Shown one piece after another: positions 10,247-49,459 of a DNA stretch of 64,000 bases. A model generated the notes under the pieces. It was not told where the DNA came from. It ran no database searches and saw only the letters and a list, made by a program, of their open reading frames with translations. Every line of letters begins with the position of its first letter. Positions within the stretch are counted from its first letter, which is position 1. The position numbers and the translations under genes were made by a program. Source of the DNA: Salpingoeca rosetta (Eukaryota; Protista; Choanoflagellata); the NCBI GenBank assembly GCA_033442325.1, contig JAWQFM010000025.1, positions 565,843 through 629,842 of the forward strand, written 5' to 3'.

Positions 10247-13200
10247 ATGGCTCAGCTTGACTTTGTCGCGGTTGTGGCCGCTGTTGTGTTGCTCATGGGC
10301 GCGCATGGGACCGGTGCACAACACAGCAATGGTGGTGGAGGTGGTGAACGCCGCACAGGCGAAGAACCGGTGATCACCACGGACGATGCGGGAAATTTGA
10401 TGCTGGAGAGCGGGTGGAACGGAAGGGTATTTGTTGGAGGCGTTGACGTGATGGCCAAGCTGCAAGCGATCGAGGACCAGCTGGCCGCAACCCGCGCATG
10501 TGCTGCTGAAGGAAAGCTGTGGCTTGGAGAGCGCTGCGTCTCTGCTGTTCCTGGCCTTGATCCCTGGAACCCTGCCAGCACCTGCGAAGAGGTACGAAAA
10601 TGCGTGTGTGTGTGTTTGTGTGTGTGTGTGTGGATGGGTGGGTGTGTGTTTGTGTGTGTGTGTGTGTGTGTGTGTGTGTGTGTGTGTGTGTGTGTGTGTG
10701 TGTGTGTGTGTGTGTGTGTGTGTGTGTGTGTGTGTGTGTGTGTGGGTGGGTGTGTGTGTGTGGGTGTGGGTGTGGGTGTGGGTGTGGATGGGTGGGTGTG
10801 TTTGCGTTTGTACAAGTGTGCTGCTATCATTCCGTTCTTGCTGCTGTGATTCCGTTCCTGCGTTCCTCTCGCTTGCGTGACTTACAACTCAACTCATCTG
10901 CTTCCACACGTACTGCTTACTGCTACCTCAGCTGCGGCTTCGTGGATTCTTGTCGGGAGAATACTATGTCGGCGGCTCATCTCCGGCACCTCGCGTCATG
11001 TGCAACATGACCACCGTACCAGCGACAAACTATGGCGGCAACGGCCTCTCTGCTGCAACCGCGGGCGTGTCATGCCTCTCCATCAAACAACAGTAAGCAC
11101 AGTGCGTGCGTGTGTGTATTTGTGTGTGTGTGTGCGTATGTGTGTATGTGTGCGTACTTGTGTGCACGTTGTCGATGTGTATGTGCTTGCTTGACCACTC
11201 AATGCAACTGCTTGTCATGTTGCTATTTGGGTCAATTCGCCTTCCATCACGCCTCTGGTTCACGATCTCACATGGCAGCATGTCATCTCCATTTTGCCGC
11301 AGTCATCCTCCTCTTGACAATGGAACCTACTGGGTTACCATCAATGGCTCAACACCCTTTCAGGTGTGTGTGTGTGTATGTCTGTGTGTGTATGTGTGTT
11401 TGTGTGTGTGTGTGTGTGTGTGTGTGTGTGTGTGTGGTGTGTTTGACATGACCCGTCCATCCAGGCAGACATTGCCAGTCCGTCTAGGTGGGGGCAAGCA
11501 CCCCCGGGCAGTGGGCAATATTAGCGGTAAGTTGTGCCACCTACGGCTAATACCTCCCAAATAACCGTAACTACTGCATTGCATTCAAAAAAGGCCACCA
11601 TTTCAGTCCCGTCGGGATAAGCGACATACGACGAGGACGGTTAGCGGACGCCTCACGCTTTTTTTAAGGGCACGACATGTTTCCGGCTCATTTGTCCCAC
11701 AGTACAGCTGCCAGATAATGAATCACATCCCTCGCTAATGCTACCTTGTGGGTGCATGCCAGGCCAAGGTCTCCCGTCTAGTCGGGGGCGGGACATCAAG
11801 CTGGCTGGGTTTCGTTATTGCCCCTAGGGAAGCGTTAGGTGATCCTACCCAACCGACCGTGCGGCAACACTATTATCGACTTCCTCCGGAAAACCTAGCT
11901 GATTCGGAGCTGTTTAGCCCTGGACTGATATGGCCATAATCTGGACGACTTTAGCATCCCCCACCAATTAAGGATTATCCTGTGTGTGTAGTGTGTGTTG
12001 TTGTGTGTGTGTGTGTGTGTGTGTGTGTGTGTGTGTGGAGTGTGCAGCGTCCATCATCGATCGCGCAATACATGCGACTTCCACAGCTCACAAGTTACCG
12101 TGCGACGTGTTTCCTTCCTCGTTTTCCTCCCTCATCATCACCACTATCACGACTTCGTTGTAGGTCACCTGTGTCAACGACGGATCGATTGAGTTGGAGG
12201 TGCAGGGCAGCGAGTTTTCATCCACAGGGTGGATCTTCTCCTTTGATGACCCGTCAAACTTCTTCAAGTGTAACTGCACGGCTGCTCTCAGCCGTCTGCA
12301 GGTGCGCACTCTGTGTGTGTGTGTGTGTGTGTGTGTGTGTGTATGTGTGTGTGTGTGTGTGTATGTGCCTGTGTGCGTGTGCTTGTATGTCTGTGTGTCT
12401 GTGTGCTTTTGTCTGCGCGTGTGTCTGTGCCTGTGTGTCTGTGTGTCTGTGTGTGTGTGTGTCTGTGTGCATTCTGTGTGTGTGTGTGTGTCTGTGTGCA
12501 TTCTGTGTGTCTGTGAGTGATGACTTGACTTTGTCCGACCAGTTTGCGGCTGTCTGCCTATCCGTCTCTCGGCTGCTGTCCGTCCGTCTGTATGTCATGC
12601 ACATATCTTTTTATCCATTCCTCACTCCTCTATCTCTCGCGCCTCTGCGTGTATCATCCCCCCAAAACACACACACACACACACACACACACACACACAC
12701 ACACACACACACACACACACACACACACACACACACACACACACACACACACACACACACACACACACCACCGCCTGCAGAACCTGACCGGCAACTGGTA
12801 CACGGGCACAATCCCACCGACAACTCTGACAAGGGAGTGCGAGGCGTACTTTGACATTGACTACCGGTCCGCTGGGCAGACGCTCACGCCGCAACAAGTC
12901 ACAGCCATCGCATCCCTCTCAAAGGACAGGGACAACAGAAATTTTGACGTGAGGGAGAGTGTGTTTGCGTGTTTGCGTGTTTGCGTGTGTGTGTGTGTGT
13001 GTGTGTGTGTGTGTGTGTGTGTGTGTGTGTGTGTGTGTGTGTGTGTGTGTGTGTGTGTGTGTGTGTGTGTGTGTGTGTGTGTGTGTGTATTTTCGTGCGT
13101 GCGTGCGTGCGTGCGTGCGTGCGTGTTTATGTGTGTTTGCAAGAGAGAAAGACAACAGACACCGAGGTGCATGCCATTGCTTTGTGAACAACATAGTATT

Positions 13201-13600
13201 GTTGGCACGAACAGCCACGCGACGTGCGTACACTTCCTCACCATTCACACACCCACGCAACATGCGTACATACGCACACGCTTGCATACCTTCACAGGTG
13301 TACACGACGTCGTGCGACGATGACAACAACGTCGCGCCGCTTGGGCATTGGATCGGTGTGGAGACGGCTGATGGCAGCGGCAACTTCACCATCCAGGATT
13401 GCTCGAGTGGCGATGGCGGCCTGACGCGACCCGACCCCACCGTTGCCAACGGCATCAACATCGGCTGTTGTGATCACGCCGTCACAGACACGTTCGCCTC
13501 CTTCCCGTTCCCGCTGCACGCGTGTGCGTCCATCAACACGGGCGGTGGTGTCGCGCTCTCCTTCAGCGCGCGCACGCTCCGCATCAAGGAGAACCCTTAA
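10247..13600 (+). CDS. Secreted protein: signal peptide, cubilin-N-like module, short coiled coil, COLFI/fibrinogen-like region
   Basis: Phase-consistent exons 10247-10591, 10932-11092, 11303-11363, 12164-12301, 12781-12948, 13298-13600. Two tandem COLFI-type N-subdomain motifs (NPASTCEELR...SGEYYV...VMCNMT; AGVSCLSIKQ..P...NGTYWV...PFQVTC), then IDY...QQVTAIASLS...VYTTSC. No Gly-X-Y helix. Confidence 0.75.
11445..11980. other. Compositionally foreign island inside an intronic (TG)n tract; candidate insertion or ncRNA
   Basis: High-complexity, TA-dinucleotide-rich stretch with (TG)n on both sides, in the intron between PFQ|VTC. No TIR, LTR or long ORF seen. Confidence 0.55.
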
Positions 13601-47524: not shown

Positions 47525-48106
47525 TGGTTGTTGATTTGTAGATGACAACACACGCACACACACGCACATACACACGCACATACACACGCACATACACACG
47601 CACATACACACGCACATACACACACATAAGCAGACAAGCGCGTGCTGACATGATTCATTCATGTGAGTCATGTGGCAGCATGGACAAGTGGCAGCCGTTT
47701 GCAGGCCAGCTATGAAGCAAGGTGAAGCAGCGCAGGCAAAGAACACGTGCACATCATATTGAAGAAGCATCAGTGACGTGTGTAACATGACATAAACAAT
47801 CAACACCGGTTCACAAGACGGAAGTGGCCGTGATCGCGCAAGCAGGAGAGTGGGGCAGGGGGGGGGCAAAGCGATGCGAGCAGAACGTAATGTTGCGCGA
47901 AGTGAACACGGGCCAGGCAAGTGGTCAAGCTGACCATGATGTTGCAGGGGGAAAGCACACACAGCCACATGAAGTAACGCATGCATGATGTGTACATGGC
48001 GTGTGGGTGTGGAATTTCAAGCACACACACGTGCACACACACACACACACACACACACACACACACACACACACACACACAAACACACACACAAAACACA
48101 ACACAG

Positions 48107-49459
48107 TCAGCACCTGGTTGGGCAGGTGAGGAGGTTCTGGAAGCTGGGCACATCAATGCATTCTGCCTGGACATTGCGGCACTGGACGGTGATGAGGCCC
48201 GAGTTGCCCGAGAGGTGCACGCGTGCGCCCACCGCCCGCAGATTGTGGAAATCGAGCGTGCCCATGATGTTGTTGTTGTACAGTTGGAGTGAGTTGCCAA
48301 CACGCGTCAAGGAGGCAAAGTCAACTGCGGTGATGGCGTTGCTGAAGATGAGGGCCAAGCCCCCAATCACCGTCACGTTCGCCATGTTGAGCGACTGCAA
48401 GCCCGTGCTGTAGAGGAGCAGGTTGTCGCTGATGGCGGTGATGCCGCCAAAGTCCACAGCTGTGAGCGGGGGATTCTGCGACAGGTCCAATGCTCCTGGA
48501 ATGCTGGAGAGGCGGCGGAAGTGCACGGACTGCAGCATGTTCTGCTCCATGCTGAGCATGCCGCCGATGCGCATCAGCCCGGCAAAGTTGACGGCTGTGA
48601 GGTCGTTATCGCGCAGGGTGATGTGGCGGCCGACACGCGTGATGCGACCAAAGTCCAGCATCTCCAGATTGTTCACGCTGGCATCCAGGTAGCCGCCGAT
48701 GCGCAAGAGACCGCCAAAGGAGATGGAGGAGATGGAGTTGCCGCGAAGGTCCACGGCGCCCGCCACAAACGTCACCTTGCTGAAGTCCACCATGGTCAGG
48801 CTGCCGCTGGTGGCCAGCACATCCCCGCCGATCCTCTGGATGGTGCCGAAGGACAGCGACGTCTGAGTGCTGGAGACGCTCACGGGCCCGTCAACGTCGT
48901 CGAGAGCGAGGAACTCCTCGCAGCAGCAGTTGATGACCTGGGCGATGATGGGCTGGCTCTGGGCGCGCACCGCAGCGCGCGATGCCGATGACGCACAGTC
49001 CAAGACCATGGGCGTTGGCGGCGGTGATGGCGGTGCCGGCGGTGCCGGCGGTGAGGACGATGATGGTGCTGTTGCGTTGCATGTGGTTGCGAGTTGGCGG
49101 AGGTGCTTCAGGTCCTGCAGCACGTTGATGCCGTTGATCCACACTCCTCCTCCTCCTCCTCCTCCGCTGCTGCTGCTGCTGCTACTGCTGCTGCTGCTGC
49201 TGCTGTTGTTGTTGTTGGTGGTGTTCAGCACAATGTCATGATGGCTGACAAGCACCAGGTTGCCGGAAGTGCCGGCGTCCACACGCAGGTCTCCGTTGCT
49301 GTCCACGCTGACAAATGGGTCGCCGCCATCCCCACCGCCGTCCTCAGCAGCATTCACCACCACCCCAACAGTGCGAGGTGTGAGTGTCGTCAGCAGCGTG
49401 CTTGCGAGAAACAAGAGCACCACCCACGACAAGCAGACACGCACTGCAAGTCGTCTCAT
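48107..49459 (-). CDS. Intronless secreted protein: cubilin-N-like module, S/G/P linker and ~22-aa receptor-L-domain/LRR-like solenoid repeats
   Basis: Likely start MRRLAVRVCLSW (49459) with signal peptide. Repeats of L..VDFG.L.RIGG.L.L..N; Cys-rich caps. 450 aa. Confidence 0.85.
   Translation of the reverse strand: MRRLAVRVCLSWVVLLFLASTLLTTLTPRTVGVVVNAAEDGGGDGGDPFVSVDSNGDLRVDAGTSGNLVLVSHHDIVLNTTNNNNSSSSSSSSSSSSSGGGGGGGVWINGINVLQDLKHLRQLATTCNATAPSSSSPPAPPAPPSPPPTPMVLDCASSASRAAVRAQSQPIIAQVINCCCEEFLALDDVDGPVSVSSTQTSLSFGTIQRIGGDVLATSGSLTMVDFSKVTFVAGAVDLRGNSISSISFGGLLRIGGYLDASVNNLEMLDFGRITRVGRHITLRDNDLTAVNFAGLMRIGGMLSMEQNMLQSVHFRRLSSIPGALDLSQNPPLTAVDFGGITAISDNLLLYSTGLQSLNMANVTVIGGLALIFSNAITAVDFASLTRVGNSLQLYNNNIMGTLDFHNLRAVGARVHLSGNSGLITVQCRNVQAECIDVPSFQNLLTCPTRC

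Follow-up and report, generated by a model that had tools for sequence, protein, structure and literature searches.

A shared N-terminal cassette with many different heads in secreted proteins of Salpingoeca rosetta, and its putative role as an oligomeric stalk

Introduction

Three secreted proteins encoded in a 64-kb stretch of Salpingoeca rosetta DNA (the window, by which we mean the whole stretch analysed) have differing heads, and the locus raises the question of whether their N-termini are nonetheless the same module and, if so, what such a module might do. An earlier note on this DNA, made by eye, had proposed a cubilin-N-terminus-like module that trimerises, docks on amnionless and displays interchangeable heads. 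Here we examine each part of that proposal with profile searches, predicted structures and searches of the genome.

Results

Three genes with one layout

The three genes follow a common layout, in which a signal peptide (called by eye) is followed by a short beta-strand module, a helix, a Cys and then a head that differs from protein to protein. On reading the translations, a C-terminal hydrophobic anchor is absent from all three. The features are as follows.

10247..13600, plus strand: gene 1, six exons, secreted protein with a putative COLFI/GON-like head (exon translations, searched singly, against PTSG_08947)
10247-10591, 10932-11092, 11303-11363, 12164-12301, 12781-12948, 13298-13600, plus strand: exons of gene 1, with GT..AG introns throughout
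10367..10450, plus strand: short-form module of gene 1, PVITTDDAGNLMLESGWNGRVFVGGVDV (leave-out HMM E 2.5e-3)
10451..10501, plus strand: amphipathic helix of gene 1 up to the first Cys, MAKLQAIEDQLAATRAC (helix of the AlphaFold model spanning residues 37-58)
13817..15121, plus strand: gene 2, intronless, 434-aa secreted protein (ORF; Pfam DUF6923/DUF5074; AlphaFold model)
13904..13999, plus strand: module of gene 2, GQVVFEEDVSGRLLMNTSDSANEHIVFNGMHT (leave-out HMM E 7.7e-15, HMM positions 2-58 aligned)
14000..14128, plus strand: predicted coiled-coil spacer of gene 2, 42 residues or six heptads, with the conserved Cys at its end (42 = 0 modulo 7; one long helix in the model)
48107..49459, minus strand: gene 3, intronless, 450-aa secreted protein (ORF)
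49121..49318, minus strand: long-form module of gene 3, made up of PFVSVDSNGDLRVDAGTSGNLVLVSHHDIVLNTT, a poly-N/S/G loop and VWINGINV (last block at hhalign P 3.7e-4; two-block pattern)
49079..49120, minus strand: helix of gene 3 up to the first Cys, LQDLKHLRQLATTC (alignment with the beginning of the helix in the family profile, the rest by eye)

The segments first picked out by eye were correctly placed, with I43 of gene 1 at 10373, V33 of gene 2 at 13913 and the gene 3 segment starting at ~49312 on the minus strand. Four assembly gaps (34608-34747, 37633-37732, 39478-39828 and 45896-46229) all lie between genes 2 and 3; because they miss the genes themselves (10247-13600, 13817-15121 and 49459-48107), continuity is no problem for any of the three.

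In an exon-by-exon search gene 1 was colinear with an annotated paralog, PTSG_08947 (P0040), at 43-66% identity. The AlphaFold model of its module (pLDDT 83) places strands at residues 11-14, 20-23, 31-32 and 35-36, directly ahead of the helix. In the gene 2 protein the signal peptide and module are followed by a coiled coil, a Cys and a propeller of seven blades with IDPGCWLP at its end, and the model of this protein (pLDDT 90.7) has a hairpin, a single helix at residues 37-82 and the propeller. The conserved Cys may form an intrachain pair with the Cys of the C-terminal DPGC instead of linking chains. Gene 3, of which there is a copy at 97% identity (C34:345765-346973), encodes a long-form module, a short helix, a Cys-rich box (NCCCEEF) and a Receptor-L/LRR-like solenoid.

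The module is common to the three proteins

Similarity was scored with a leave-out HMM of eight propeller-family modules from other loci, window modules excluded, at Z = 12000. Genes 1 and 2 both score with it (E values listed above), as do L005 with a PQQ/SBBP head (4.7e-6) and L007 with a solenoid head (2.7e-3), and the gene 1 module used as a query matched paralog modules at E 1e-11 to 3e-2. The gene 3 module falls below significance in this plain scoring (E 7.4). It is a long form, with a poly-N/S/G loop and additional strands of the same x-L-x-h-x type, and when the family profile is aligned with the gene 3 N-terminus by hhalign, the VWINGINVLQDL block has P 3.7e-4. A pattern of two blocks, D-x(1-3)-G-x-L-x-[ILVM] and then, at most 70 residues on, h-x-h-[NDG]-G-h-[DN]-h, matched nothing among 369,287 background residues except gene 3, the copy of it at 97% identity and one further long-form protein. 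Intermediates between long and short forms exist as well (L010, L035b, L069 and P0114). Two proteins with the gene 3-type head and Cys box bridge the forms: L010 has an intermediate module in the same position (E 8e-6), and L060 a canonical one there, whose profile score is marginal (E 0.039) so that this module is read mainly by eye. Judged on sequence, the similarity of the three modules is confirmed to exceed chance; the short strands followed by an amphipathic helix in all three proteins, as put forward in the earlier note, are borne out.

A large family in choanoflagellates

By profile, the three genes belong to a large superfamily of secreted choanoflagellate proteins with one N-terminal cassette. 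A six-frame search of the S. rosetta genome with the module profile returned at least 150 matches, none with internal stops, at least 147 of them at E <= 1e-3 among the matches listed; again among the matches listed, contig 4 carries at least 43 and contig 25 at least 20, often as tandem or head-to-head pairs. Against 1.84 billion proteins (1.84e9) the profile found 198 protein clusters at E <= 1e-3, and of the best 150 of these, 117 have the module inside residues 1-60. Named members belong to S. rosetta, Monosiga brevicollis and Microstomoeca roanoka and are annotated as hypothetical throughout, and no Pfam model matches the module. The family consensus of three short beta-strands reads EVVxxEDDxGaLHINTSDPxxqPVFVNGVDV, and in environmental proteins module and coiled coil alternate several times per chain. 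The propeller subfamily corresponds to an OrthoMCL cluster of 151 genes that the 2013 genome paper contains but leaves undiscussed, and several family members are transcribed at a low level, enriched in thecate cells (PMC4054682 supplements). The cassette is thus a genuine feature of the whole family, undescribed and lacking a Pfam model.

Unrelated heads behind one module

Scanning the genome with the profile and tabulating what follows the module, as the earlier note had suggested, supports its idea of interchangeable heads: the module is joined to no fewer than six unrelated types of head, across some 150 or more S. rosetta genes and in other choanoflagellates. In the table sample (33 genomic members and 102 database proteins) the Pfam head types were DUF6923/DUF5074, Recep_L/LRR, SBBP, Kelch, PQQ_2, FG-GAP and TNFR_c6, with a further COLFI/GON-like domain, sub-threshold in Pfam, in the gene 1 group.

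The gene 2 head is, as first read, a beta-propeller, with DUF6923 at 45.1 bits (cut-off 27), DUF5074 at 40.8 bits (cut-off 27.2) and a 7-blade AlphaFold model whose Foldseek neighbours are generic 7-blade propellers, e.g., Vgb lyase and YVTN. The gene 3 head reaches 18.9 bits on Recep_L_domain (PF01030) against a cut-off of 21.8, and module-bearing relatives with this head type match it at E 1.4e-8 and 9.9e-13. For gene 1 the earlier label was COLFI-like. The head lies near COLFI/GON/Fibrinogen_C clusters (0.92-0.93) in Atlas language-model features, but Pfam membership does not follow: COLFI (PF01410) scores 18.1 bits against a cut-off of 26.2 in the paralog PTSG_08947, over profile positions 25-69 only, and gave no match to any gene 1 exon searched singly. 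We treat the COLFI-like nature of this head as a lead.

A heptad-quantised helix

In 38 paralogs the helix spacer varies from 14 to 74 residues, and its length falls in only three classes modulo 7, namely 0 (24 paralogs), 4 (11) and 3 (3); that 14 distinct lengths should fill only three of seven classes has P ~2.5e-4. In the heptad core, L/I/V make up 78% of one position, and Q/L occupy the other. The gene 2 AlphaFold monomer shows a beta-meander and a single 46-residue helix that has no packing partner. Read from its heptads, the helix is shown to be a real coiled coil with a heptad core, changing length in heptad-compatible steps only, and it behaves as the stalk that it had been taken for.

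Discussion

The best explanation of these data, to which we give a probability of roughly 0.6, is a superfamily defined by its cassette, whose members would form an oligomeric coiled-coil stalk carrying swappable heads for recognition or adhesion. Directly behind the signal peptide, three short beta-strands lead into an amphipathic helix, two to ten heptads in length, with a conserved Cys at its end and then a head that can have nearly any fold. Helices from several chains would pack into a parallel coiled coil, whose register would be fixed by the beta-strands interlocking at the N-terminal end, comparable to the foldon of fibritin and the intertwined beta-helix of cubilin. This N-terminal cap may also dock on a partner in the membrane or theca. 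The outcome would be a rigid stalk presenting several copies of one head, and the diversified repertoire would likely be used in extracellular recognition or adhesion, be it of prey bacteria, theca or matrix; we infer a recognition function from architecture, family size and clustering.

Which oligomer might form is suggested by several hints. The best structural neighbour of the modelled module is trimeric cubilin, with weak scores, and the several module and coiled-coil repeats per chain in environmental proteins may be analogous to segmented fibres. Softer hints towards a trimer are the Gln-rich core and the head types, two of which, the TNF/C1q-like head of M. brevicollis A9UZE0 and the COLFI-like head (both sub-threshold), would fall in trimer-forming superfamilies. 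A trimer is probably the likeliest state, at about even odds.

Among other explanations the one that survives best, although we consider it unlikely, is true homology between the module and the cubilin N-terminus, with three chains forming an intertwined beta-helix that docks on an amnionless-like transmembrane partner and so gives all members one membrane anchor. The cubilin N-terminal region (residues 36-135, PDB 6GJE; Larsen et al. 2018, PMC6283879) does share the layout, being a mature N-terminus with no anchor of its own in which beta-strands precede a coiled coil, a Cys-rich part and binding domains, and choanoflagellates are the sister group of animals. Its chain 6gje_B also ranked first for the AlphaFold model of the module, both in Foldseek among 350,542 chains (E 1.8, prob 0.51, TM 0.48) and in an independent VIA-align search run exhaustively against 48,161 chains (Z 3.0, rmsd 2.7 A across 46 residues), the latter aligning model residues 14-59 with cubilin 53-100 such that the gene 1 helix falls on the cubilin coiled coil. 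However, these scores are not significant, and unrelated hairpin-helix chains come within 1 Z of 6gje_B. There is no detectable sequence similarity either, as phmmer of the three N-termini and four profile searches (including A2, A3 and A7) found no cubilin among PDB chain sequences at E <= 10. The likeness claimed in the earlier note is weakly supported by the modelled fold and is not seen in sequence or profile matches.

The rest of the cubilin apparatus is likewise missing from view in this genome. A six-frame search with Amnionless PF14828, exons scored singly, gave no homologue of the partner that the earlier note had envisaged; the sole match (20.3 bits, cut-off 30.4) is low-complexity intron sequence of another gene, an artefact. 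No cubilin-like CUB protein was found, the three PF00431 matches in the genome lying nowhere near a module. It also should be considered that the common short form has three short strands per chain, fewer than the hairpin and three-turn intertwined helix of a cubilin chain, and that certain environmental proteins have the module flanked by coiled-coil segments, away from a free end.

A borrowed or convergent PEGA-type beta-hairpin, acting mainly as a binding tag (e.g., for theca, glycocalyx or polysaccharide) and not as an assembly device, is in our view quite unlikely. The module profile matches prokaryotic PEGA-repeat proteins via many weak repeats, and one environmental member reaches 23.8 bits on Pfam PEGA (cut-off 20.8), but the best match covers PEGA positions 2-22 of 71 only, and no match above the cut-off was found over the whole ~71-position sandwich. 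Aligned with those repeats by hhalign the module profile gives P 1e-8 over 27 columns, a value that is biased because the repeats were chosen for already matching the profile, and the curated PEGA model is reached by one of 34 S. rosetta modules, at E 0.044. Moreover, a binding tag leaves unexplained the strict coupling to a heptad-quantised helix.

Very unlikely is a pro-region or a sorting or quality-control tag for folding or routing diverse cargo, removed or irrelevant in the mature protein: the cassette does always stand directly behind the signal peptide, its cargo domains are mutually unrelated and alignment A3 has a conserved N-x-S/T sequon (INTS) in the second strand, but alignments A3 and A4 contain no conserved dibasic or other cleavage motif between helix and head, tandem module and coiled-coil repeats exist within one chain, and helix length is kept in heptad register relative to Cys and head, which favours a structural stalk in the mature protein.

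A putative oligomeric stalk with exchangeable heads can be set beside several known systems. Cubilin is one gene with EGF and many CUB domains, whereas the module family counts some 150 or more genes and heads of many types, among them propellers, solenoids, TNFR-Cys and COLFI-like domains. In PEGA (PF08308), found in prokaryotic surface proteins and hence in other taxa, the first hairpin resembles module strands 2-3 (G-x-L-x-I-x-[ST]-x-P..V-x-V-[ND]-G) over ~21 to 27 of ~71 positions, but the PEGA domain is a full beta-sandwich, and the module has no sandwich after its hairpin since the helix begins at once.

Closer in plan are the olfactomedins (coiled coil and 5-blade propeller), the collectins and tetranectin (neck and C-type lectin), in which a signal peptide, a coiled-coil oligomerisation stalk, a Cys and a C-terminal head give the multivalent display proposed for the module family; structure neighbours of the gene 2 stalk model in the Atlas include C-type lectin and olfactomedin clusters. 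These families differ in having one head type each, no N-terminal beta-strand cap and no sequence relation to the module. The foldon of T4 fibritin is a small C-terminal beta element that sets coiled-coil register. Neither it nor the trimeric fibres of phage and Bdellovibrio are homologous to the choanoflagellate proteins, which are known here from sequence and monomer models. Phage receptor-binding proteins and the chimeric fibre proteins of Bdellovibrio (PMC10769870) nonetheless resemble the module family, with its putative assembly or anchoring end, in joining such a conserved end to exchangeable recognition tips, and in forming a broad repertoire where recognition of bacteria is a necessity for the organism.

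Results

Three genes with one N-terminal module

The same N-terminal segment, a short run of beta-strands directly after the signal peptide followed by a helix that extends to a conserved Cys, is carried by all three of the following genes.

10247-13600, + strand: gene 1, six exons with GT..AG borders
13817-15121, + strand: gene 2, a single ORF of 434 aa
49459-48107, - strand: gene 3, a single ORF of 450 aa counted from Met

Each product begins with a hydrophobic, signal-like stretch as judged by eye, and a C-terminal hydrophobic anchor was found in none of the three. When the exons of gene 1 were translated and each was used as a separate query, the matches were colinear with PTSG_08947, an annotated paralog, with identities of 43-66%; searches with gene 1 used such single exons or this database paralog rather than the joined protein. 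Introns follow the GT..AG rule and are filled with (GT)n, and in gene 1 (10592-13297) all five contain (GT)n or (CA)n microsatellites, some of more than 100 bases, with a non-repetitive island of ~535 bp (11445-11980) in intron 3, between exons 3 and 4. Four N runs, which are assembly gaps, lie at 34608-46229 between genes 2 and 3, and since they touch none of the three genes, frame continuity across them is irrelevant to the module finding.

The window corresponds to contig 25:565843-629842 and has a GC content of ~54%; related proteins have database twins with PTSG_ names, which identifies the source as S. rosetta. Two other ORFs of the window were noted. One (15805-18354, - strand) encodes 849 aa, is highly Q- and H-rich without a Pfam match, and contains four to five copies of a ~95-residue repeat (..MLEVPLIDMTQHQRPNHHPHQEVQHVQMHQVRQVRQEMA.IDTRNHQ..). 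The other (44240-47025, + strand) is protein-kinase-like by a weak PK_Tyr_Ser-Thr match of 22.4 bits; its downstream part is broken by the assembly gap at 45896-46229.

Pairwise MAFFT alignment of the three N-termini gave 22-25% identity, which is uninformative. Searched against the genome (55.4 Mb in 68 contigs), the gene 1 segment retrieved the modules of paralogs with E values between 1e-11 and 3e-2, standing before COLFI-like, PQQ/SBBP, propeller and solenoid heads. To avoid circularity, an independent HMM was built from eight propeller-family modules, all taken from other loci, and it recovered gene 2 (E 7.7e-15) and gene 1 (E 2.5e-3) as well as proteins with a PQQ/SBBP head (E 4.7e-6) and a solenoid head (E 2.7e-3). 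Gene 3 fails by plain HMM scoring (E 7.4). Its module is a long form in which additional x-L-x-h-x strands occur and a poly-N/S/G loop separates the INT[ST]-type strand from the h-x-h-N-G-h-[DN]-h strand. For gene 3 the shared module claimed in the earlier note is upheld by three other lines: hhalign matched the last block at P 3.7e-4; a two-block pattern run over 369,287 residues of background frames had no occurrence outside gene 3, its 97% copy and a single further protein of long form; and intermediates that share gene 3's Cys box and solenoid have the module at the same place in canonical form (locus L060, at a marginal profile score of E 0.039), loop-expanded form (L035b) and strand-expanded form (L010, L069 and PTSG_04244). 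An alignment restricted to long forms (A6) proved too unreliable as a profile and was dropped.

The second copy of gene 3 (locus L046, G000:C34:345765-346973, against window 48107-49339) lies on another contig and is 97% identical, as a recent segmental duplication would explain; the poly-N/S/G loop is of slightly different length in the two copies.

Interchangeable heads

That these proteins form one plain paralog family can be rejected, as their heads belong to different Pfam families and folds; the finding of one module before unrelated Pfam head types confirms the proposal of a common stalk with interchangeable heads. The head of gene 2 is a propeller, with DUF6923/DUF5074 matches exceeding the Pfam cut-offs and an AlphaFold model showing a 7-blade propeller at pLDDT 90.7. 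The L-domain solenoid proposed for gene 3 is a Receptor-L/LRR-like solenoid following the Cys box; its relatives with this head score well over the Pfam cut-off, although gene 3 itself falls slightly under it. For the gene 1 group, a COLFI/GON-like head can be offered only as a lead, the COLFI match staying below cut-off.

Members of the propeller family (loci L023-L043) end exactly at a conserved ...VLVIDPGC plus stop, and have one further conserved Cys directly after the coiled coil. This pair of Cys may hold the propeller closed or may link chains. Gene 2 is atypical here (15100-15121), with three extra C-terminal residues (GCWLP).

The helix is a coiled-coil stalk

The helix after the module is a coiled-coil stalk. 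The spacer between the NGVDV motif and the first Cys measures 14 to 74 residues across 38 non-identical propeller members, and modulo 7 these lengths fall into class 0 (24 members), class 4 (11) and class 3 (3) and no others. Because paralogs share descent, raw counts overstate independence, and so the statistic was taken on distinct lengths: 14 of them occupy three of the seven classes, with a chance of ~2.5e-4. When heptads are counted backwards from the Cys, L/I/V make up 78% of one position, and Q or L occupies the position four residues from it. The AlphaFold model of gene 2 comprises the strands, a single 46-residue helix and then the propeller; the gene 1 module modelled by itself reached pLDDT 83, and a search of the ESM Atlas with the gene 2 stalk returned only generic long-helix neighbours.

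Size and spread of the family

A nine-sequence profile matched the genome in at least 150 places, with E <= 1e-3 for 147, and this count is a lower bound, with 150 of 160 candidates scored. All 150 fall within stop-free open frames, most of them 400-550 aa long; contig 4 holds 43 and contig 25 holds 20, often as tandem or head-to-head pairs. At loci L023, L028, L035 and L038 (contigs 25, 4 and 36) two family genes stand head to head with starts no more than a few hundred bases apart, and at L035 the pair consists of a propeller member and a solenoid member.

Against 1.84 billion representative proteins, a profile of 34 modules (A3) found 198 clusters at E <= 1e-3, and in 117 of the 150 clusters listed the module lies inside the first 60 residues. 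The named members, all annotated 'hypothetical protein', come from S. rosetta, Microstomoeca roanoka and Monosiga brevicollis (A9VDR3 with a Receptor-L head, A9UZE0 with TNFR-Cys, and A9V7M9); the others come from environmental contigs. Pfam heads among 33 genomic members and 102 database proteins comprise DUF6923/DUF5074, Recep_L/LRR, SBBP, Kelch, PQQ_2, FG-GAP and TNFR_c6. Run against the 34 modules themselves, Pfam gave nothing consistent, and no Pfam family matches the module.

Several database proteins show further arrangements. A9UZE0 (P0048, 637 aa) has the module, TNFR_c6 repeats (51.5 bits) and then a C-terminal region which matches both TNF and C1q profiles over almost their full length but below the cut-offs (E 0.003-0.006), and which is possibly, going by these profile matches, a pre-animal TNF/C1q-like head on the stalk. 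Four proteins from ENA/Logan environmental contigs (P0001, P0003, P0013, P0024) repeat the module and a Q/S/T-rich coiled coil two to three times per chain, an arrangement resembling segmented fibres. P0042 joins the module to Kelch (gene 6001-7050) on a gene-dense metagenome contig of 87.5 kb and ~52% GC (locus L075, JGI 3300042365), with a ribonucleotide reductase small subunit and TPR proteins as neighbours; in a second copy the neighbours include a 2285-aa TNFR-Cys protein. The contig may derive from a protist or a giant virus, and an IMG/VR scan with P0042 found no relatives.

Earlier records and expression

Of the family, the propeller subfamily alone has an earlier record, in the form of an OrthoMCL cluster in a supplement. 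This cluster, OMG10072 in the supplement of the 2013 genome paper (PMC4054682), holds 151 S. rosetta genes, as counted from the listed identifiers, and no M. brevicollis members; it includes six proteins that we found independently (PTSG_10778, 02679, 06473, 09652, 10705 and 00108). The words 'propeller' and 'expansion' are absent from that paper's main text (PMC4054682), and a search of full-text literature found no paper describing the family; a TRPW preprint proved unrelated. In the portion of the expression tables covered (PMC4054682), family members have low FPKM, with thecate-cell enrichment among several (PTSG_02679, 02728, 02674, 02647, 02718) and higher values in colonies or swimmers for PTSG_10705 and 11416. 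Published FPKM values also differ between thecate cultures fed on Algoriphagus only and those on mixed prey.

Discussion

The earlier note likened the module to the cubilin N-terminus, in which a coiled coil follows a beta-helix that docks on amnionless (Larsen et al., PMC6283879). Structure comparison favours cubilin at weak scores. With Foldseek, its chain 6gje_B was the best of 350,542 PDB chains for the module model (E 1.8, prob 0.51); in a second look with VIA it was the only chain with Z >= 2, and when VIA was run exhaustively over 48,161 representative chains it again ranked first at Z 3.0, COMMD and other chains tying within 1 Z. The VIA alignment places model residues 14-59 on cubilin 53-100 at 2.7 A rmsd. 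Sequence comparison weighs the other way: single-sequence and profile searches of PDB sequences returned no cubilin, and their matches, such as de novo TIM barrels and phosphoglucose isomerase, are noise. A BFVD viral fold search gave nothing significant. We read the module and the cubilin N-terminus as the same kind of object, with cubilin the best available analogue, and regard homology between them as unproven and improbable.

The amnionless-type anchor that accompanied this comparison finds no support, as Amnionless (PF14828) was not found in the S. rosetta genome; the sole match was microsatellite or low-complexity sequence within an aldehyde-dehydrogenase-like gene. CUB gave three matches in the genome, none near a module. 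Trimerisation of the cassette is plausible but unproven.

A resemblance to the prokaryotic PEGA domain is a further lead, drawn from sequence. Module strands 2 and 3 resemble its first hairpin. The match spans only about one third of the domain, and its best statistic rests on repeats that the module profile itself had already picked out. Five large proteins of prokaryote type, each with 7-13 PEGA-like repeats (P0016, P0032, P0070, P0136, P0137) score on that profile at E 1e-13 to 1e-5 because many weak hairpin matches sum, and such proteins are a pitfall for any family model built from it.

On the boldest reading, to which we give a probability of roughly one in eight, the cassette is related to the tip with which cubilin trimerises and docks on its anchor, and predates animals; choanoflagellates would use it to hang some 150 or more heads, be they propellers, solenoids, TNFR-like or C1q/COLFI-like domains, on one shared putative membrane or theca partner. 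If true, the closest relatives of animals would possess a combinatorial, germline-encoded repertoire recognising bacteria, and the one cubilin-amnionless receptor would have survived as an offshoot of that repertoire. The family also offers a possible, unproven pre-animal context for the unusual cubilin-amnionless architecture.

If every match is a gene, the family would account for about one gene in 80 in the best-studied choanoflagellate. The module would also serve as a compact natural oligomerisation tag whose stalk length can be tuned. The recognition repertoires of collectins, phage fibres and Bdellovibrio fibres arise from a shared assembly stalk and freely exchanged heads, and the same logic in the bacterivorous sister group of animals makes this family a testable candidate for prey, matrix or substrate recognition.
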